From Lepidodermella squamata (taxonomy: Eukaryota > Animalia > Gastrotricha), in contig JBLDXI010000038.1 in the NCBI GenBank assembly GCA_047495785.1, positions 310,001 through 374,000 of the forward strand: DNA of 64,000 bases. The letters are read 5' to 3'. Below the pieces are notes generated by a model. The model ran no database searches and was not told where the DNA came from. It saw only the letters and a program-made list of their open reading frames with translations. Made by a program: the position numbers and the translations under genes. Positions 3,025 through 57,818 of the stretch are shown here, one piece after another; the first letter of the stretch is position 1; each line of letters opens with the position of its first letter.

Positions 3025-3581
3025 AGGTGCGTTTTTTATTAAAACCGAGGTGCTATTGTTCAGCGCTGTGATCAATTTTTCGGTGAGATTCGCAACAGAG
3101 AAATCACAATCGGCACGTCTATCATGAACTGACCGGCTCGAATTGCGGTCAAGGCCGGTCAGAAAAGACAAATCCCCGCGCGGATTAAGAACATTTGGCC
3201 GCGGCTAAATCGTGACATGGCTGTAATTAATTTACGACCATGCAACATGTGACCCTCGTTAATTTCTGACCGCATGTCTTAAGAGCTAATTTTATCAAAA
3301 CTACGCAGAAAAGGTTTTTTATTTTCTCCGCAATTATCGAACATGAAATCGATTTTAAAAAAATCGATCAATTTGGTAAAATTTATGAAAATCCAAAGCA
3401 TTTTAGGCGATTTCTGACCATTATTTTGAATCCAAACTTGCCGACAAGTTCGAATTTCATCATTTTCAATTTTTGAGTTTTTGATTGGGTTTGAAAAGCT
3501 TTAACTTTCCGTGTGTGTCATCTGGTGTTAATAGATGTAATTAGTTTTAGGCACACCACGGTTTTAATAAAAAACGCACCT
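3025..3581. mobile_element. MITE / non-autonomous DNA transposon, 557 bp
   Basis: Perfect 23-bp TIRs AGGTGCGTTTTTTATTAAAACCG; CTA flanks both sides (3022-3024, 3582-3584) as a putative 3-bp TSD; no ORF. Confidence 0.85.
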
Positions 3582-4238
3582 CTATGAGCTTTTTCGATTT
3601 TTAGAATTTCCGACTTTCAACATCCGGGGCTAGCTCTGGCGGGTGGTTAAAACGATGGTAATGGATTTATTTGCATTTTTCACTCATCAGCGATCGGGCT
3701 ACTGATGCATCTCCATGCCCACGTGAATTCCTGTTTGTCTGTGTTTAATGCATCTCTCTCGTCACAAGCTTAATCATCAGGCGATGAATGCTGAGGTCAC
3801 GGACAGCGAATCGTGTGATCGTTGTTAAAGATGAACATCACGCAGCACTTAGGCCACGTCTATTCGAAGGTGTTTTCGTTTAATTATATACGCTTTACGT
3901 CATTATTTTCGAGAAAGAAGCGGCTTTGGATGCATGAATCGTCCGTCTTGAACCTGTGTTATACTTGTTGTAGTCACGAATCCTGGTCGCATGATAGTAT
4001 TATCATAAACCGCATACTTTTAGAAAACTTTTTCAACGGTCAATAACAAATGCTATGTAAAATCAAAAACAAGATTTTTCAATAGCAAAGACGTGCTTGA
4101 CAATTTTATGGTTTTATGGCACGAAACGTGTAGGCGCCTGTATCGAGCATCTGTTTAGAACCAACACGAACGAATAAATCAACTACACAAACAACAATAC
4201 TCTTAATTTGCCCTATTTGGATAAAGCAATGTCAACGG

Positions 4239-4246
4239 TATAAAAG
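4239..4246 (+). promoter_or_regulatory. TATA box of TEP1
   Basis: TATAAAAG 75 nt upstream of the ATG at 4314. Confidence 0.6.
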
Positions 4247-4313
4247 GCAGCCAAGCTCTTAAATATTCTTGCATATAATTTTTCCTAGCGAAAATTACCT
4301 GTAAAAGTTTGAA

Positions 4314-7300
4314 ATGATATCAGCCATACAATTGTTGGCTATAGTTTGTACATGCCTGCCGGCAGTCGTTCATATGGTGGACCCTAGTCAAGCGGAACCG
4401 GTCAAGTAAGATTTGAATAGAAGCTAATGCAGTTTTGCTATAAGCTGGCAATCATTTTCCAGATTCGTCTTATCTTTCCCGAGAATATGGAGACCGAGCA
4501 AGGACTTCGATTTTCATCTTGTCCTCTTCGAAAACTCGAACTATTCTCTTCCCGTCTCATTCACAGCCAATTTAACGCTGAATGATAAAAGCCTGGCAGT
4601 TCAGGACTTCGTTCAAAATAGCTGTAATTTTTACATTTTTTTACTTACAAGGGTAAATGACAATTTCTTCCTTAATAGATGGATATCAAAAGCACACATT
4701 CAAGGTTTGCTTCAAAATTTCAAGCTTTGATAGCAAATGATTTATTTTTCAATAGAATATCAGAGAAGCTGTTTCGAGGGCCACCGGCTCCGACGACGAG
4801 CAGTATATTTCGCCCTTCGTCTCGATTACATTCACGACTAACGGCTTGAAAAACTACACCGACTTGAACTCTTACCAAACAAAACTTGCCGAGCAATTTG
4901 TCTTTATACAAACTGACAAGTCGGTTTACAAGCCTTCGCAGAATGTTAAGATTCGCGTTGTTGCTGTTGATCGCGATCTCTTGCCCATTTCTGCTTCTGG
5001 AGTAACGGTTACCGTTCAAAATCCCAACGACGACATTTTGCAGCAGTGGACTGGAGTTACGCTACAGAACGGCCTGTATGCGAATAATTTTTCACTGTCG
5101 GACTTTACTGCGTTCGGAAACTGGAAAATCTCGGTTAAGGGCGACGGTATACCTGACACTGAGAAAACCTTTCTAGTACAACAATACGTACTGCCCAAGT
5201 ACGATGCAAATTTCGAGTTTCCACCGAATAGCTATTGGTTGGCCACGAAGGATGGTGACTATAAAGGATACGTAAAAGCTAAGGTGATCATAGATAAAAA
5301 TCTAAAAAGTATTCGGGAAATAATGCTGATGATTTCCTTTTATTACACAGTATACGTTTGGCAAACCTGTCAAAGGGAAGGGCTACGTCGTGTTGTCGAG
5401 CACGGGAGGTTGTCAATGGCGGTACGATTCTCAGTATATCTACGACCTACCACCCATGCCAGTTGACGTTGTCGCCGTCGACGCTGTCGACGCCGCCCCA
5501 GCGATTGGAGCTGGTAAAATGGTCGCGAGACCGTTCTTCCCGCCCGGCGGAAATCCACCAAAGAAGATGAACATTTCCTTCACTCTTGCTGGTGATGGTT
5601 CAGCTGAGGATGGAGCTTTTGTTATCAAGGGCCTTCGCAAAGATATACTGTTCTTTGACCGTCCAACTGCCATGGACAGTGAGTTGCTGCCATACAACAA
5701 CTCTCTTTGCACACTCACGTTCGAGGCTAATGTGACCGAAGAATTGACTGGCGAGGTTAGTTCGATTGTCTTGAAATATCGAAAATTCATTTTTTAACTG
5801 AATTCATTTGTATTGCTAGGTGATCAAAGCTTCCGGCTCTGTGCCACTTTACGGGGCTGCTTACGCCATCAAAACACACGAATCAGTTCAGAAAACTTTG
5901 AAACCAGGCCTTCCATTCACGATGCGATTCCAAGTGACCCGGCCCGATGGCTCGCCAATTACCGGGAACGTTGCTGTTTCAGTCAAGGTAAGCAGAGATT
6001 GCAATATAATTTCTCATTCGCATCCATCCATCGATTGATCTTCCCAGGTTTACAACGAAATGAAGGTTACTACAACCCCAAGTCCACCTGAAGTCGATAC
6101 GGGAGTGGTATCTTCTAGTTTCCGGAGACCTTTCATTACTCCCTATTACTCCGGTATTAACTGCTGGAGCATTCAGCAAGGCTCAGTTGACGAGAAGCAG
6201 CTGACGCCTCAGACATTTAGCCTCACTACTGATTCGAATGGTATAGTTAGTGTTGACGTCACTCCACCGGTTAATGTATCGAACGTCTACTTCCTGGCGA
6301 GCCTTCCATCGGCACCTAATGTCAAATTTTGCGACAACCGATCCCCGCCTCAGTCAGTTAGCAACCAAGCTCTGAGCATTCGTATTGATCGACCCATTTC
6401 CGCACAATCATCTATTCCTAAGGTTTGAAAAATGAAAGCTCAATTTTTACCTATTCATCGAAATCTTACCATCAACAGGTCAATGATAAACTAACATTCA
6501 AGATCACCTCGACCTCTCAGGTTCCATTCATCTATTTCATCGTAAGAGAGCTCGAAACGTTTTGAGGCCGTTAAAATTGAAGTTTCCTTATTTCAGCTGT
6601 CGCAAAACGGGCAGGTGCTTGAATACCGCAAGGTTACCCAGTCCCAAGCCGCTGGAAGTGGTCTTCTGTTCACAGTCGATGTCGCGCTGCCCAGCGGAGC
6701 GGCGCCCCGCGCATCCGCCTTGGTCTGGACCGTTATCAACACGCCGACCAATGTCAGCGAGGTCCTCGCCGATGCTATCGATTTCAAAGTCGATGGATTG
6801 TTGAAGCTTAACGTTACGGCATCGTTTAGCCCGAGCTCAGCTCGTCCCAGGGACCCGGTTCAACTTCGTGTGAAGACCAGCGAGCCTAATGCAACCGTCG
6901 CACTGCTTGCCGTTGATAAAAGTGTGAAACTTCTTGGCAGTGGCAACGATATCACGCTCGATGACGTCCTTGGAACTGTTGATGCCAATGAAGGCGGACC
7001 TATTGTATCGCCAATGTTCATGCGTTGTTGGGCGTGCGATTGGTGGCCTAGGTGGATTGACAGCTCGAACGCAGACAGCGTTTTTAACGTAAGTATAGTT
7101 GAGTTACTTTCTCATTTGCTTATCCAATGTGTTCCTCTTATAAATGACAGGGCGTTGGAATGACGGTCAAAAGTAACGCGATAACATCAGCGGTAATTAC
7201 TCAATTAACAAATTTCCGGGTGTGATTGAATTGGTTTCTTTGTTTTCTTTGTAGCAAATGATATGGTTCCCGTACATGCGTTTCCAGCCAATGCCTGACA

Positions 7301-51077: not shown

Positions 51078-51786
51078 GGTTATAATATCAAGTGGACTTT
51101 TTGGTATATTTATTCTTCTTATCCATAAACATGGGGTTCAATGTTTGAAATGGAGAAAATGCAACAAATATTTTTAGGAACAGTTGTGGGTTATATTTAT
51201 CTGCCTATTTATGCATGTTTGTAAAGTAATAACCTAGTGAAACGACTTTCTTGCTTTGTCTCTTGAACCGATGATTTGTTTCTTTTTGATGGGCTCTATT
51301 ATCTATTTCCGGCGGTTTACTCTCGCTAAGGTATAATACGTCGAGTGTCAACTTGACCTGTATTCGATGAGAAAAATTATGATATTTAGTCTTGTGAAAT
51401 TTTGCTTCTCGTTCTCGAGGGCCATATTAATATTTATTCTTACTCTGTCACACGCTTTTCTATTCGTAACAAAATCGCTTTTTGTGATGCACCTTGTATA
51501 TCCTCTGCAACCCCGACGTACGTTGATGAAACCTAAAATTGATGCGAAACGGAGAAATTGAACGGAAATTATACGACAACCAAAAAGTGTTTTATTTAAG
51601 CAAATTACTGATTACGATCGTCATAATTTTGATTTGCTTGAATGAAAAAGTACAATTCGATCGTTAATTAACTAATGAGTCAAGCACGCATACTGCTATT
51701 CAAATAAATGACAGTGCAATCTTGATAATTTATTTCCAATTTTAGATATTTTAAATGAAAATATTCTCGGTTTACTCAAGACACGT

Positions 51787-51831
51787 CAGCCTCATGAATA
51801 ATTCATGAGGGCTGGAAATTTCTATCTTTTC
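51787..51831 (+). promoter_or_regulatory. Putative promoter of the snoRNA host: palindrome plus TCT/5'TOP-like initiator
   Basis: CCTCATGAAT-A-ATTCATGAGG inverted repeat, then the pyrimidine tract TTTCTATCTTTTC (candidate C+1 at 51826), 61 nt before the first donor. Confidence 0.45.
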
Positions 51832-51924
51832 GGGAAAATCGATACAAAGGGTTGAATGAAGTGCGTCGAAATCAATATTGTTTGAGGTAAATTTATATTT
51901 TTCTATTGTACTTGCTGGCTACCC

Positions 51925-52062
51925 TTGCGCATTTTCTTGACGCCGTTCGACTTGACTTGATGAAAAATGGCACGAGAAAAAGCGCAAAAATGAAATGAAA
52001 TTCAATCAACTTGTACAACTAAAACTAAAGTGTTGTATCTTGTGAGTTAATTGTCGACATTT
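51925..52062 (+). ncRNA. H/ACA-like RNA, family E (single copy)
   Basis: TTGCGC/GCGCAA-closed hairpin, H box AAATGA 51988-51993, second hairpin (GTACAAC/GTTGTAT), ACA 52057-52059. Pockets are unclear. Confidence 0.5.
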
Positions 52063-52151
52063 TTTATTTCAGATTTGGCTGATGAAATCGGAAAATGGGA
52101 ATTTCTGCAAAACTGCAAAAGGTGTGTAAACGTTCGATTCATTAAAAATTG

Positions 52152-52285
52152 GTGCACGGAAATTCCAAGGATTGCCATATGTTATACCATGGGCGATTCC
52201 GGATCCGTTGCTAGAGCTTTCAGAAGTATTTTCAGCGAAAGCGCCTTCTTAATGACGCTCATCGTGTAAACGACTTCAAATATTT
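52152..52285 (+). ncRNA. H/ACA snoRNA C1 (divergent copy)
   Basis: Same pockets as C2/C3 (ATTCCAA/CGGA and TTTTCA/GTAAAC) with different stems; H-like AGAGCT; terminal ATA. Confidence 0.75.
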
Positions 52286-52366
52286 TTCTTGTCCAGACTA
52301 CGCTCATGCCGATCATGCAGTTTGCTGCTACTTTATTAAGGTGGGTGTTTAGTCATGTCAAATAAG

Positions 52367-52512
52367 TTCACGCCTAATCCAGAGGATCACCACTAACGTA
52401 GGTGTGGTAGTTACCTCAGCGTAGCGTGTATATTGAAGTTCCGGAGCGACGATAGCTCTGACTAGGCATTTCTCTCGGTTGCATCGGTCAGCGGGAAATT
52501 TCTCCGACAATA
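52367..52512 (+). ncRNA. H/ACA RNA, family D (single copy, target not identified)
   Basis: CACGC/GCGTG and GAGG/CCTC stems; hinge ATATTG; CGGAG/CTCCG stem directly followed by ACA 52507-52509; pocket strand GGGAAATT 14 nt from ACA. Confidence 0.7.
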
Positions 52513-52619
52513 AAGTTTCGTTTATTCATTTCAGATTCTTCATCCTGCGAGCTTCAGCTGGTTCGGCAATCGCGATGCATCCCTTGATGTGAGTTGATTT
52601 CCTACATTTATTCTTGCTG

Positions 52620-52767
52620 GTGCACGTAAATTCCAAGAATTGCCGAATTATCGGTCTCAGACCGCACACTTGGTGATTTCCGGAGCCGTTGCTAGAGAAC
52701 AACTAGTTTTTTCAACGATCCATCTTAATCCTTGAAAGATTTGTCGTGTAAACAGCCAGTAACAATA
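52620..52767 (+). ncRNA. H/ACA snoRNA C2
   Basis: H box AGAGAA, ACA 52762-52764. The 3' pocket TTTTCA/GTAAAC pairs with 18S GUUUAC-UU-UGAAAA at a 14-nt distance. Confidence 0.85.
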
Positions 52768-52864
52768 TTTTTCTCTTTAGAATTCAATCGAGTGATCCAT
52801 GGCGCTGGCGAATTGAAGAAGCCGTTTGAAAAGGTGAGTTCTCGAGCAATGTTTAAACCGTTGA

Positions 52865-52998
52865 ACCACAGCTTAGCTGCGTACGTCCGAATTCCGTTGG
52901 CACTACGCCTGTTCCCGCTAGTGGATATTGAAATAAGATGCATCTATACGTCGTTTTCTTTGTTGCGAAAACTGCCGTACGCTTGGTATCTAACATCT
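52865..52998 (+). ncRNA. H/ACA snoRNA A1
   Basis: 5' pocket TTAGCT/TGTTCCC pairs with 28S GGGAACG-UG-AGCUGG; 3' pocket CTAT/ACGCTTG pairs with 28S CAAGCGU-UC-AUAG; ACA 52993-52995. Confidence 0.9.
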
Positions 52999-53102
52999 TG
53001 CTTTTTCTAGATTTTCGAGGGGCCAATAAATCAAATCCTGAATTGGTGAATCGAAGAATCCGTTTGAAACAGTGAGTTCTCTAGCAATATCTCAACGATT
53101 GA

Positions 53103-53236
53103 GCCACAGCTTAGCTGCGTACGTCCGAACCCCGTTGGCACTACGCCTGTTCCCGCTCGTGGATATTGAAATAAGATGCATCTATACGTCGTTTTCTTTG
53201 TTGCGAAAACTGCCGTACGCTTGGTATCTAACATCT
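53103..53236 (+). ncRNA. H/ACA snoRNA A2
   Basis: Near-identical to A1; ACA 53231-53233. Confidence 0.9.
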
Positions 53237-53366
53237 TCCTTTTTCCAGAGTCGATCCAACAATGGCCGAACGATCGAATTTGAAGAATTTGAGCCATAAG
53301 GTAAGCTCTAATTTCATTTAAAGGGAACTTTTGTCGGAGGTTAAACGGAATGGGGCAGAAATTCTC

Positions 53367-53504
53367 TACACAACATCCTGGGGTCGTAGCTCGGGTTCGC
53401 CCTGTGCAAAGACACCGTTCAAGTTGTGTAATAGTATCAGAGGAATTAGCACTGAGTGGAAATTTTACCGTTCTCGCATTCGGTGGGACATTTCTCTTAC
53501 ATTT
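53367..53504 (+). ncRNA. H/ACA snoRNA B1
   Basis: TACACAAC/GTTGTGTA stem, H box ATAGTA, AGAGGA/TTCTCT lower stem, ACA 53499-53501; pockets TCCTG/GTTCA and TTAG/GGGACA. Confidence 0.9.
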
Positions 53505-53621
53505 CTTTTTCTGTTCCAGATTCGTGTCCCAAACCGGAATACTACTTTCTGCAGCCTCTGGACTGGTTTATTGGTTATCAGGTACGTTATTCTAGAATTT
53601 TTTTATAGTTGTTAGTTTGTA

Positions 53622-53757
53622 GCCACAGCTTAGCTGCGTACGTCCGAATTCCGTTGGCATTACGCCTGTTCCCGCTAGTGGATATTGAAAATTGATACAT
53701 CTATACGTCGTTTTCCCTTCTCATCGAAGACTGCCGTACGCTTGGTATCAAAAATGT
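53622..53757 (+). ncRNA. H/ACA snoRNA A3
   Basis: Family A copy with a different apical loop, GATAC/GTATC stem and terminal AAA in place of ACA. Confidence 0.85.
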
Positions 53758-53856
53758 TATTTTATTTTCCAGATCTCCGCCTTCTGTTCGTTATTGGCTT
53801 TGATCGGCTCCTATGAAATGAGGTATGTCAGATGTTTATCTTTACCTTTCTTAATT

Positions 53857-53996
53857 TACACGACATCCTGGGGTCGTAGCTCGGGTTCGCCCTTTGCAAA
53901 GACACCGTTCAAGTCGTGTGATATGATCATGCAAAATTAGCACTGAGTCGAAATTTTATTTGTTCTCGCATTCGGTGGGACATTTTGCTTACATTC
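53857..53996 (+). ncRNA. H/ACA snoRNA B2
   Basis: Compensatory stems CACGAC/GTCGTG and GCAAAA/TTTTGC; H box ATATGA; ACA 53991-53993. Confidence 0.9.
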
Positions 53997-54095
53997 TGCT
54001 CTTCATTTCAGAATAAATTCCAACAAGCAGGATCAAATGGCATCGGCACCATAACACAAACAGGTATGTATCGAGCTGTAATAATAATTTTCGAG

Positions 54096-54240
54096 GTGCA
54101 CGTAAATTCCAAGAATTGCCTAATTCACGGTCTTAGACCGCACACTTGGTGATTTCCGGAGCCGTTGCTAGATTAAATACTTGTTTTTTCAACGGATGTC
54201 TTTTTCATAAGATTTTTCGTGTAAACGACTTGTTACAGTG
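54096..54240 (+). ncRNA. H/ACA snoRNA C3
   Basis: 5' hairpin near-identical to C2; H box AGATTA; ACA 54235-54237. Confidence 0.85.
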
Positions 54241-54343
54241 TATATATTTTAGAACTGCCACATTTTGCTGAGGAAATTTTACCTGCCTACTCCGCTGGCT
54301 GTACTGATAAAGGTTAGTGACTATATTTAGTAACTCTAGCCTT

Positions 54344-54477
54344 GCCACAGCTTAGCTGCGTACGTCCGAATTCCGTTGGCACTACGCCTGTTCCCGCTAG
54401 TGGATATTGAAATAAGATGCATCTATACGTCGTTTTCATTGTTGCGAAAACTGCCGTACGCTTGGTATCAGACATTT
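54344..54477 (+). ncRNA. H/ACA snoRNA A4
   Basis: Family A copy; ACA 54472-54474. Confidence 0.9.
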
Positions 54478-54617
54478 TTCTTTGTTTTTCAGGCAAAATA
54501 ATCCGTTGCCTTCGACTCCGTTCTGTGCACCTCATGACATCAGGCAAGTGTTTTCTCTTTTATACAGAGCCTACGATTAGATTAAGGAGGAATTTCTTGT
54601 TTCATCGTTTTTTCACC

Positions 54618-54755
54618 TACACAACATCCTGGGGTTGAAGCTGAGCAAATGCTTGTGCGTAAACACCGTTCAAGTTGTGTAATAGTATCAGAGGAATTAG
54701 CACTGAGTGGAAATTTTACCGTTCTCGCATTCGGTGGGACATTTCTCTTATAGTT
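54618..54755 (+). ncRNA. H/ACA snoRNA B3 (in a GC-AG intron)
   Basis: Compensatory upper stems (GTT/AAC for GTC/GAC; GAGC/GCTT for GGG/CCC); H box ATAGTA; terminal ATA 54750-54752. Confidence 0.88.
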
Positions 54756-54858
54756 TTCTTTTCATTTCAGATCTTCTCCCAGTCTGAAACTGGCAAACGT
54801 TGTGTTTATCGATCGTCTTTCTATCAGGTTGGTTGATTTATATTTTTGCCGGTTATTA

Positions 54859-54992
54859 GCCACAGCTTAGCTGCGTACGTCCGAACCCCGTTGGCACTAC
54901 GCCTGTTCCCGCTAGTGGATATTGAAATAAGATGCATCTATACGTCGTTTTCTTTGTTGCGAAAACTGCCGTACGCTTGGTATCTAATATCT
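54859..54992 (+). ncRNA. H/ACA snoRNA A5
   Basis: Family A copy; terminal ATA 54987-54989. Confidence 0.88.
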
Positions 54993-55092
54993 TCCTTTTT
55001 TCCAGGTTGATTGAGGGTGCCCGTGAATGGAATCGGTGAATCGAAGAAGCCGTTTGAAAAAGTGAGTTGTCTATCAATATTTCAACCTTTGA

Positions 55093-55229
55093 GCCACAGC
55101 TTAGCTGCGTACGTCCGAATTCCGTTGGCACTACGCCTGTTCCCGCTAGTGGATATTGAAATAAGATGCATCTATACGTCGTTTTCCTATACATATCGAA
55201 GACTGCCGTACGCTTGGTATCTAATATGA
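55093..55229 (+). ncRNA. H/ACA snoRNA A6
   Basis: Family A copy; terminal ATA 55224-55226. Confidence 0.88.
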
Positions 55230-55414
55230 CTTCTTTATTTTTAGATTGGTGTATACCACGACTATCTCCTGGCGGTTGGTTTAATTTGTTGATCCTCCTT
55301 ATTTCCTAGATGCGAGAAGATATAATGACGAAAAATTGCTATATTTTCTAGATTTGTTAAAATGATAATTTTTAACCGATTTTGATTTGACACAATCGAT
55401 TCCTGGTTAAAGTC

Positions 55415-57818
55415 ATGGCAACTGCCAATGAGTCAAAGCTGGCCGATTTGCTTACTAGGGCTACCACTCTTTTCGGTACTACTTCGACAGGGTCAAGCTC
55501 GATTGATGAGTTCTGCGCTCTAGTCAAGTCGGAACCTGAAGGCCCTCAAATCACCCTCCGTCTCCTCGCTCACAAATTACAATCACCAGTTGAAAGTGAA
55601 GCAATGGCTGCGTTGGACGTCCTTCAACGTTGCGTCGAGACATGCGGTCCAACTTTTCACGCCGAAATCGGAAAATTCCGGTTCTTGAATGAAATCGTCA
55701 AAGTCATTTCGCCAAAAGTGAGAATAATTGCCAATTATTGATTCCATTCAGCCCATAATTTCCATGAAATCTTCGAAGCATGCCACCTTTGATAGATTTA
55801 CAGACAGTGGGCAAAATTAATTAAGGAGGATGTGTATTTGAAAATGATCCCATTGTGAATTTTCGAGAATTTTTCCTTGAACAGAACCTGTATTTTTCAG
55901 TACTTTGGAGTCTATACCTCAGCTCGCGTCAAAGATCGGTGTATCGAAATGATGTATGGCTGGACGAAATCGTTGAAAAATGAGCCGAAAATCGCAGAGG
56001 CATACGAAATGCTACGGAAACAGGGTTTACTGCGTATCGACCCGGCCGCTCGTGAGCTCGAAGCTGAGGCAGCGAAAAAGGCGGCCGAGGCTGAAAAGCA
56101 ACGGTTCAGCGCAGCCAGTGCCGGTTCAGTCGCGCTCGGTTTGCCTGAAGCGCCGAAGCGGTCAACACCTCGAAAGCCGATTTTGGACGATGATCGTGCG
56201 AAAACGTTGAAAATGCTACTCGCCAGTAAGCGGCCGGAAGACCTTCAAGCAGCGAATCAGTTGATCAAGGAAAGTTTGAAGCAAGATGAAGAGCGGGTGG
56301 AGCGGCATTCGAAACGGCACGCGGAGCTGGAAATAGTTCGAAATAACATGACCCTGTTAACCGATATGTTAGACCACTACGAAGAGTCATTGATGGCTCA
56401 AACCCCGGACGCGAGAACGCCGAAAAACTCGACCTCGGACTCGGATACCGACACGGATGTTATGGCTGAGCTGTATATGATGTTGGACAAACACCGGCCC
56501 GCCCTATTCCGCATGGCCTCGGAGGTCGAAGAGACCGAAGACGACATGCTTGCGGCGTTGTTACGAGCTAATGACGAATTGCTCGAAGTTTTAGCGAGGT
56601 ATCGTCACCTAGTGAATGGCGAGCCTATGATGACCAGCCAACCTCGTCCTCAAAAAACGAAGAGCAGCACGAATAGTGCTCAAAAAGGCGACTCGAATTC
56701 CTCGTTTTTGGTCGACGTAGCCGATCTGTTAACATCACCTCAACAGCCGTCGAATAACACGTCTCCAAAGGGGGGCCAAGGTATCGACTTACTCAGTCAA
56801 GAGCTGGCAGCAGTCGGCCTTTCCCCGCCAACTTCGACTTCGAGTAATAACAAATCGCAGCTGGAAGAAGCCAAGACTGCTTTTAAAGAGTTTTCCACAT
56901 CGAACAGTTCTTCCCACGGCCTCGATTCTGAATTAATCAGTCTCGACCTGCAATCAGCAGGCAGCAACGGCAATCTTCCGAACAACTCGGTTCAGAAAAT
57001 TCTCGACTCCTTATCGACCTCGCAGTCTGGCGGTGCTTCTTTGATGCAGAATGACCCTGTACCACGAAGAAATACGCCCCAGGCGAAGCAGATGGACGCT
57101 CTAGATCTGCTCGGCCAAGAAGTGATTCAGAAACACCTGCCTGATAAAGCGCCGAAACCGGTTGTTGAAACGAAACCAGCTCAACCGCCAGTCCCAGCCG
57201 CTGCTTCAACCTGCCTCCTCGATTCAGATGACATGCCGAGTGAGCCACCGTCAAAGCCTGCCGAATCCAATGGTAACGGTGTCGCCGAAGATCATACTAA
57301 GAAATCTCAGTCGTCCACAGTTGATTTGAGCGAGTTGACGTTCTCCCTCGATCGTTTTCGCCCGCTCTCTTCAGCCAGCCCTATTTCGCTTTATCAGCGT
57401 AACGGTATTAACGTCCTATTACTACTTAATGCCGACTCACCGCATCCAAACGTGAAAGTATTTCTCGTCTCGTCCTCCTCAATGGCCGCAGATCCGATCA
57501 CAAATTTCAAAATGAGCTTCTCCGTGCATGCGGTAAATGTTGCTTTCGAAAAATATTAAGGAGGAATTTAAAATTTTTTATTTTTCACAGAAACAAGCCA
57601 AAGCTTGTCAAATAAGGCCTCTGGATGCCTCAGCTACATCACTGGCTCCGTTCAACCCAATTATGGCGCCATCTGTTGTGACTCAACTTATTTTCGGCGC
57701 GTTTACTGCCCCGTTCCCCGATTCGTTGAAGTTGCGTTTTGAAGTGAGCTATCGTCTTCGCGATACCTGCTACAGTGAGTCGGGAATTGAAGAAGTTCCT
57801 CTATTTTTCGAGTCATAA
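55415..57818 (+). CDS. GGA: GGA (Golgi-localised, gamma-ear-containing, ARF-binding) adaptor
   Basis: VHS (EPEGPQITLRLLAHKLQSPVESEA, EIGKFRFLNE), GAT (LLASKRPEDLQAANQLIK, RPALFRMASE), hinge, GAE ear (SLAPFNPIM); introns 55718-55900 and ~57533-57590. Confidence 0.95.
55751..55886 (+). ncRNA. Box H/ACA snoRNA candidate F in GGA intron 55718-55900
   Basis: GCCCA/TGGGC lower stem; AAATCT-TCGAAG/CTTTGA-AGATTT upper stem; H box AAATTA 55814-55819; TTAAGGAGGA/TTTTCCTTGA stem then ACA 55881-55883. Both pockets lie 14 nt from their box. Confidence 0.75.

Follow-up and report, generated by a model that had tools for sequence, protein, structure and literature searches.

The 64,000-nucleotide stretch of Lepidodermella squamata DNA analysed here (called the window) contains a Sec24-like gene and a VHS/GGA-like gene (GGA below), separated by 3.4 kb without a long open reading frame (ORF) on either strand. 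A chain of short exons with 14 introns was placed between them; the three genes are all oriented on the plus strand. Each intron holds one structured unit, and the locus is very probably a non-coding host gene that carries one box H/ACA small nucleolar RNA (snoRNA) per intron. The locus is real and probably unannotated. An earlier note on this DNA had proposed such an all-H/ACA non-coding host, and the proposal is supported by a spliced RNA devoid of a meaningful ORF, by the folds of the units, by the complementarity of two unit families (A and C) to ribosomal RNA (rRNA) and by compensatory changes in a third one (B).

The units fall into five families, A to E. A direct-repeat search, alignment and blastn all reproduced the order E-C-D-C-A-A-B-A-B-C-A-B-A-A given in the earlier note. 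The 3' end of a unit was set three nucleotides after its ACA (or AUA) box, which results in lengths of 133-149 nt. Units start 27-74 nt past the donor (~30 nt in most); their 3' ends are 10-15 nt from the acceptor, except in D, where the distance is 22 nt. The exons, introns and units are the following.

51810..51886, plus strand: host exon 1; an RNA contig (run X1) covers 51810-61, with a joint across intron 1
51887-52072, plus strand: intron 1; unit E at 51925..52062, two hairpins, hinge AAAUGA, ACA+3, fold z -3.6, no open 5' pocket
52122-52296, plus strand: intron 2; unit C (C_I2) at 52151..52285, non-canonical hinge AGAGCU, AUA box, 3' pocket matching a small-subunit (SSU) rRNA site
52341-52534, plus strand: intron 3; unit D at 52368..52512, stems CACGC/GCGUG and CGGAG/CUCCG, hinge AUAUUG, ACA, hand-drawn fold only
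52589-52780, plus strand: intron 4; unit C (C_I4) at 52619..52767, H box AGAGAA, ACA, 3' pocket matching the SSU site
52834-53010, plus strand: intron 5; unit A at 52866..52998, predicted dual guide for the peptidyl-transferase region of the large-subunit (LSU) rRNA
53072-53248, plus strand: intron 6; unit A at 53104..53236; host intron spliced in RNA
53301-53519, plus strand: intron 7; unit B at 53367..53504, H box AUAGUA, ACA, structure backed by covariation
53582-53772, plus strand: intron 8; unit A (A_I8) at 53623..53757, pockets intact, AAA replacing ACA, hinge altered
53823-54011, plus strand: intron 9; unit B at 53857..53996, H box AUAUGA, ACA
54064-54252, plus strand: intron 10; unit C (C_I10) at 54095..54240, H box AGAUUA, ACA; alternative acceptor at 54238
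54313-54492, plus strand: intron 11; unit A at 54345..54477
54544-54770, plus strand: intron 12, with a GC donor; unit B (B_I12) at 54618..54755, AUA box
54828-55005, plus strand: intron 13; unit A (A_I13) at 54860..54992, AUA box
55062-55244, plus strand: intron 14; unit A (A_I14) at 55094..55229, AUA box
55245..55351, plus strand: last host exon and spacer to the acceptor AG 55350-55351; loose end of the GGA contig at 55350

Splicing and coding potential of the host RNA

The evidence for splicing consists of RNA contigs from one public low-depth run, X1, whose label gives RNA only as a guess. The run is indeed RNA, since a GT-AG intron (55718-55900) is missing from its 2.8-kb GGA contig. Re-placement of the host introns yielded the same lengths that the earlier note had reported, 175-227 nt for the 14 introns and 44-62 nt for the exons between them, with GT-AG borders throughout except for the GC donor of intron 12. 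The contigs of X1 skip introns 1, 4, 6, 7 and 10 at the exact predicted borders. At introns 2, 3 and 8, loose contig ends continue into the next or previous exon (exon 2 to 3, 3 to 4 and 8 to 9), and exons 6, 7 and 8 are joined in a single 77-nt contig. The junction check suggested in the earlier note thus revealed that 8 of the 14 introns are precisely spliced. The GC-type donor of intron 12, GCAAGT at 54544, is a predicted one and lies outside the RNA coverage.

The contrast drawn in the earlier note with introns of ~45-80 nt elsewhere is roughly right for the Sec24-like gene, where greedy chaining, only partly reliable, gave three inferred introns of 51-55 nt with good splice sites, and others without. 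It does not extend to the GGA gene, whose first intron measures 183 nt.

The spliced host RNA of 808 nt has stops in all three frames, and its longest ATG-initiated ORF comprises ~58 aa. The description of the exons as a scaffold without an ORF is therefore correct, and a coding reading of the exon chain was rejected since all three frames are closed. In X1, the host RNA reaches a depth of 2-9, compared to 167-200 for the neighbouring genes, which fits an unstable by-product RNA.

The contigs cover neither the transcription start site nor the 3' end of the host. Exon 1 contains a pyrimidine run (51826-51832), located downstream of a 21-nt palindrome. This palindrome, CCTCATGAATAATTCATGAGG (51790-51810), is made of two 10-nt arms and a central A, occurs once in the window and directly precedes the first host RNA contig. 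It could act as a promoter element or form a hairpin where the host begins.

Structure, constraint and predicted targets of the units

The H/ACA identity has good support in families A, B and C; it is plausible in D and weaker in E. Two hairpins and a hinge were found in the minimum free energy (MFE) or consensus folds of A, B, C_I2 and E. In C_I4, C_I10 and D the MFE structure differs from the two-hairpin fold, which for D was drawn by hand only. D and E are H/ACA-like by shape only. Family B provides the clearest signal of a conserved structure: 39 pairs, with 99% of the cells paired across the three copies, include six compensatory double-sided changes, whereas slid-partner controls give 0-1 compensatory pairs. 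The three covariations already quoted for this family are real and all belong to these six.

A canonical H box (ANANNA) directly follows the 5' hairpin in B (AUAGUA, AUAUGA), C_I4 (AGAGAA), C_I10 (AGAUUA) and E (AAAUGA). Most A copies have AAAUAA or AUAAGA 6-8 nt further on from the AUAUUG at their 5' stem; A_I8 has lost these motifs. The C_I2 hinge, AGAGCU, does not follow ANANNA, and its box is perhaps degenerate. At the 3' end, ACA is present in nine units, AUA in four (A_I13, A_I14, B_I12 and C_I2) and AAA in A_I8, which is likely a degenerate copy.

Paralogous units share 87-98% identity in family A, 78-88% in B and 68-83% in C. The 30 nt before the A units and the upstream exons show 0.43-0.63 identity in most pairs, compared to 0.50 for random 30-mers. 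Exon identity between paralogs is thus near random for most pairs, as expected from the earlier remark that the exons are mostly unrelated. Only introns 5, 6 and 14 form an exception, with flanks and exons at 0.72-0.83 identity, which points to a recent module duplication. Tandem duplication of exon-plus-intron modules is indeed visible (direct-repeat family D1), in agreement with the idea of an array amplified by duplication. The alignment of family A has 24 variable columns, all of them outside the 26 columns of the pockets (P=0.0035), and the pocket strands can be called fixed, as the earlier note had done. The constancy of the units next to mostly random flanks indicates constraint on the units, and argues against a plain repeat or a transposon.

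According to that alternative, the units would be a locally amplified non-autonomous transposon, such as a short interspersed element (SINE) or a miniature inverted-repeat transposable element (MITE), or a plain tandem repeat in introns, devoid of any RNA function. Multi-copy hairpin units of ~135 nt without an Rfam match speak for it, but it is highly improbable. Every intron has a single copy, always on the same strand and at a fixed distance from the acceptor (10-15 nt, 22 nt in D), and five unrelated families share a single architecture. The compensatory changes in B, the invariant pockets of A amid mostly randomised flanks and a complementarity to rRNA beyond that of shuffled sequences also oppose it. 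The earlier note had considered units outside introns as the mark of a SINE or MITE; no other copies were found in the 64-kb window. DNA word depth, summed over the units, reaches no more than ~3.7x single copy, without excess, and with units constrained relative to their flanks the transposon reading was rejected.

The pockets were compared to heterologous eukaryotic ribosomal DNA (rDNA) from metagenomes, found via a conserved LSU motif. At least 120 loci were obtained, 14 of them long; a viral collection yielded one truncated rDNA locus. Controls consisted of 300 dinucleotide shuffles, and positions refer to the Rfam-annotated locus L002 (SSU 1045-2849, 5.8S 3132-3286, LSU 3650-6955). Every position 13-17 nt upstream of each box was enumerated, blind to expectation, and in this unbiased enumeration the 5' hairpin of family A (A-HP1) and the 3' hairpin of family C (C-HP2) gave the top matches on eukaryotic rDNA.

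A-HP1 pairs with GGGAACG-UG-AGCUGGGUU (GGGAACG-U-G-AGCUGG) at LSU nt 2911. The pairing comprises 7+9 bp, of which 13 bp fall within the pocket (16 if the stem opens), with 15 nt to the hinge box; it is present in all 14 long loci, and none of the 300 shuffles reaches its score. The pocket of A-HP2, read by hand, pairs with GCCAAGCGU-UC-AUAG (CAAGCGU-U-C-AUAG) at LSU nt 2810 by 9+4 bp (11-13 bp), 14 nt from the ACA, in 10 of the 14 long loci (3/300 shuffles reach the score). Both target uridines are located in the peptidyl-transferase region (domain V), 101 nt apart, the A-HP2 site being the upstream one. C-HP2 pairs with a conserved SSU site, UCGUUUAC-UU-UGAAAAAAU (UCGUUUAC-U-U-UGAAAA; nt 751), by up to 8+9 bp, 14 nt from the ACA box. 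All three C copies keep this complementarity (13-17 bp) despite differences elsewhere; the match occurs in several long loci, and 0/300 shuffles reach its score. The spacing between pocket and box is correct for A and C, which represent 9 of the 14 units.

The A-HP1 site is tentatively equated with that of yeast U2944 (snR37) and human SNORA10. In our own numbering, its target uridine presumably precedes the first U of GGGUUUAG by 9 nt. This context fits the spacing between U2944 and U2953 given in bioRxiv 10.64898/2026.03.20.713187, where human U4521, a predicted SNORA10 target, corresponds to the U2944 site.

Several points weigh against the H/ACA interpretation. The stable RNAs of 130-150 nt and their ends are predicted from the sequence only. 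Six introns without RNA support fall outside the coverage of X1, a gap due to low coverage that is nevertheless counted here. The Rfam comparison proposed in the earlier note placed no unit in a family at the gathering threshold (scans at gathering and E<=10); the best sub-threshold matches were SNORA63 on two A copies (19.8 bits vs 90, E about 6) and snoR134 on C_I10 (15.3 bits vs 40). Next to their 5' stem, A and D have AUAUUG and not ANANNA, and A_I8 carries AAA where ACA is expected. Family D folds no better than shuffled sequence (z +0.67), and the 5' hairpin of E (E-HP1) is a closed stem with no canonical pocket. The rRNAs compared come from other eukaryotes and not from L. squamata, and in 120 of these heterologous loci no significant or recurrent target emerged for B, D, E or C-HP1.

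The missing recurrent targets favour an alternative that concerns B, D and E only. These could be other intronic structured RNAs, either small Cajal body-specific RNAs guiding the pseudouridylation of small nuclear RNAs, or H/ACA-shaped RNAs without guide function. B-HP1 shows only a non-significant 10-bp match to 5.8S (UGAAC-UG-CAGGA), in three loci. Heterologous rDNA may, on the other hand, lack lineage-specific target sites, and this alternative is considered rather unlikely.

If the locus is a host gene for H/ACA guides, RNA polymerase II would transcribe the chain of ~50-nt exons, and splicing, seen for eight introns, would release all 14. Each released intron would consist of the 5' splice site, a spacer of 27-74 nt (~30 in most), an H/ACA snoRNA of 133-149 nt and 10-22 nt to the AG. 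Each two-hairpin unit is expected to be bound co-transcriptionally by Dyskerin/Cbf5, Nop10, Nhp2 and Gar1. Once the intron is debranched, exonucleases would trim it to a mature guide ending 3 nt after the ACA or AUA, with the spliced exon chain as a low-abundance by-product. The six copies of family A would guide the pseudouridylation of two uridines in LSU domain V, and the three copies of family C that of one SSU uridine. Families B (three copies), D and E would be H/ACA RNAs with no assigned target. The array probably grew as modules of one exon and one intron were duplicated in tandem. Flanks and exons would then have decayed, whereas the snoRNA units were kept constant by selection or gene conversion.

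Acceptor spacing and neighbouring genes

The 10-15 nt that separate ACA+3 from the AG (22 nt in D) are just a pyrimidine tract, too short to accommodate a branch site on the 3' side of the snoRNA. The box of most A, B and C copies lies in a U-N-ACA/AUA context (CUAAC, CUUAC, GUAAC, GUUAC), 15-18 nt from the AG (at 52993, 53231, 53499, 53991, 52762, 54235 and others). This context over the ACA box resembles a branch-site consensus. It is left as an observation because D, E and the unit in GGA intron 1 described below do not share it. In mammals, box C/D snoRNAs are reportedly found ~70 nt from the acceptor (Hirose and Steitz 2001). Within intron 10, an RNA contig uses an alternative acceptor at 54238 (ACAG/TG), right after the ACA box of C_I10; an intron excised in this way would end 1 nt past the ACA.

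Upstream of the host, the Sec24-like ORFs reach ~51000, and the messenger RNA (mRNA) contigs end at 51686 in two independent runs (X1 and X3), leaving ~124 nt to the start of the host RNA contigs. An AAUUAA-type signal is located ~15-20 nt upstream of this end. Downstream, the GGA gene has its ATG at 55415. Its abundant mRNA contig begins at the acceptor AG 55350-55351, 106 nt after the last host acceptor, with 15 non-genomic letters, TTTGATTTGTGTCTA, which do not occur in the 64-kb window. These letters probably derive from the 3' portion of a spliced leader (SL). They appear unlike the nematode SL1, rotifer and Ciona leaders, and their 12-nt core matched no described SL in a literature search that included tardigrade and annelid SLs.

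The only other RNA-proven intron nearby is GGA intron 1 (55718-55900, 183 nt). It folds into a pair of hairpins joined by the hinge AAAUUA and has an ACA, forming a unit at ~55751-55886 whose ACA+3 end lies 14 nt before the acceptor, a geometry as in the array. This unit is a possible fifteenth H/ACA snoRNA candidate; in the heterologous rDNA no recurrent rRNA target was found for it, with an ACA index that was 2 nt off.

Given the leader on the GGA mRNA and the ~124-nt gap between the Sec24-like gene and the host, the three genes may constitute an operon resolved by SL trans-splicing, or else the outron of GGA might be the array. The mini-exon chain would then lie upstream in a polycistronic or outron transcript that also includes GGA, and possibly Sec24, and from which SL trans-splicing at 55351 frees the GGA mRNA. 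The common strand of the three genes, the leader absent from the window, the 106 nt between the host and GGA acceptors and the H/ACA-like unit of GGA intron 1, with the same 14-nt spacing, speak in favour of such a transcript. No RNA contig bridges host and GGA, however, host exons 13-15 being outside the coverage of X1. The 15 letters could also be a contig artefact, and matched no described SL. A shared transcript is considered less likely than not. It concerns the host only and is compatible with the units being snoRNAs, the output of which would be driven by that transcription unit. It is somewhat more doubtful that the array is the spliced upstream segment (an outron or first "cistron") of an SL-trans-spliced unit making the GGA mRNA, perhaps following Sec24, in which the ACA region doubles as the branch site or displaces it. 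If true, snoRNA production would be coupled to operon transcription, with an unusual splicing geometry.

Comparison with known snoRNA hosts

As a non-coding host of intronic H/ACA snoRNAs, the locus would enrich the annotation of a little-studied small animal by up to 14 unannotated guide RNAs of five families and by the gene that hosts them. Three rRNA pseudouridines are predicted from it, two of which would lie at the ribosome's catalytic centre, and it shows guides that are strongly held constant while the host decays. The tight spacing between snoRNA and acceptor and the leader-bearing mRNA next door make it a locus for studying small nucleolar ribonucleoprotein assembly, branch-site choice and operon processing in compact genomes.

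The locus is most simply an ordinary UHG/SNHG/dUhg-type host, and flies, mammals and fungi offer familiar examples of its layout. The literature also describes hosts of H/ACA snoRNAs such as U17HG and U19HG. The array, called hidden in the earlier note, is probably unannotated, but its novelty was overstated because non-coding H/ACA hosts and one-snoRNA-per-intron arrays were already established. The mammalian UHG/SNHG1, GAS5, U17HG/SNHG3, U19HG and SNHG12 are likewise spliced poly-exonic RNAs without a meaningful ORF and with one snoRNA per intron; their exons are poorly conserved relative to the snoRNAs, and the spliced host is scarce. In comparison, the array described here packs 14 H/ACA units into 3.4 kb, with one guide in up to six copies and introns pared to ~30 nt, the snoRNA and ~13 nt. 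It may also be linked to the next gene by an operon or trans-splicing, and the pyrimidine run in its exon 1 is a possible counterpart of the 5' terminal oligopyrimidine start of such hosts.

Non-coding snoRNA hosts and the rule of one snoRNA per intron are established (e.g., PMC2780460). The UHG-like clusters of Neurospora (PMC2780460) and the Drosophila dUhg genes are multi-intron non-coding hosts with tandemly duplicated snoRNAs and alternative host splicing. An alternative acceptor occurs here too, in intron 10. The dUhg and fungal arrays are mainly of the box C/D type, whereas all units here are H/ACA, strictly one per intron. In Drosophila, H/ACA snoRNAs often occur several per intron.

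Family A can be compared to snR37/SNORA10, since A-HP1 is complementary to the equated site. There is no detectable similarity in sequence or to the Rfam model, and family A is compact (133 nt), without the extra helices of snR37. Its 3' hairpin would act as a second guide, for the uridine 101 nt upstream.

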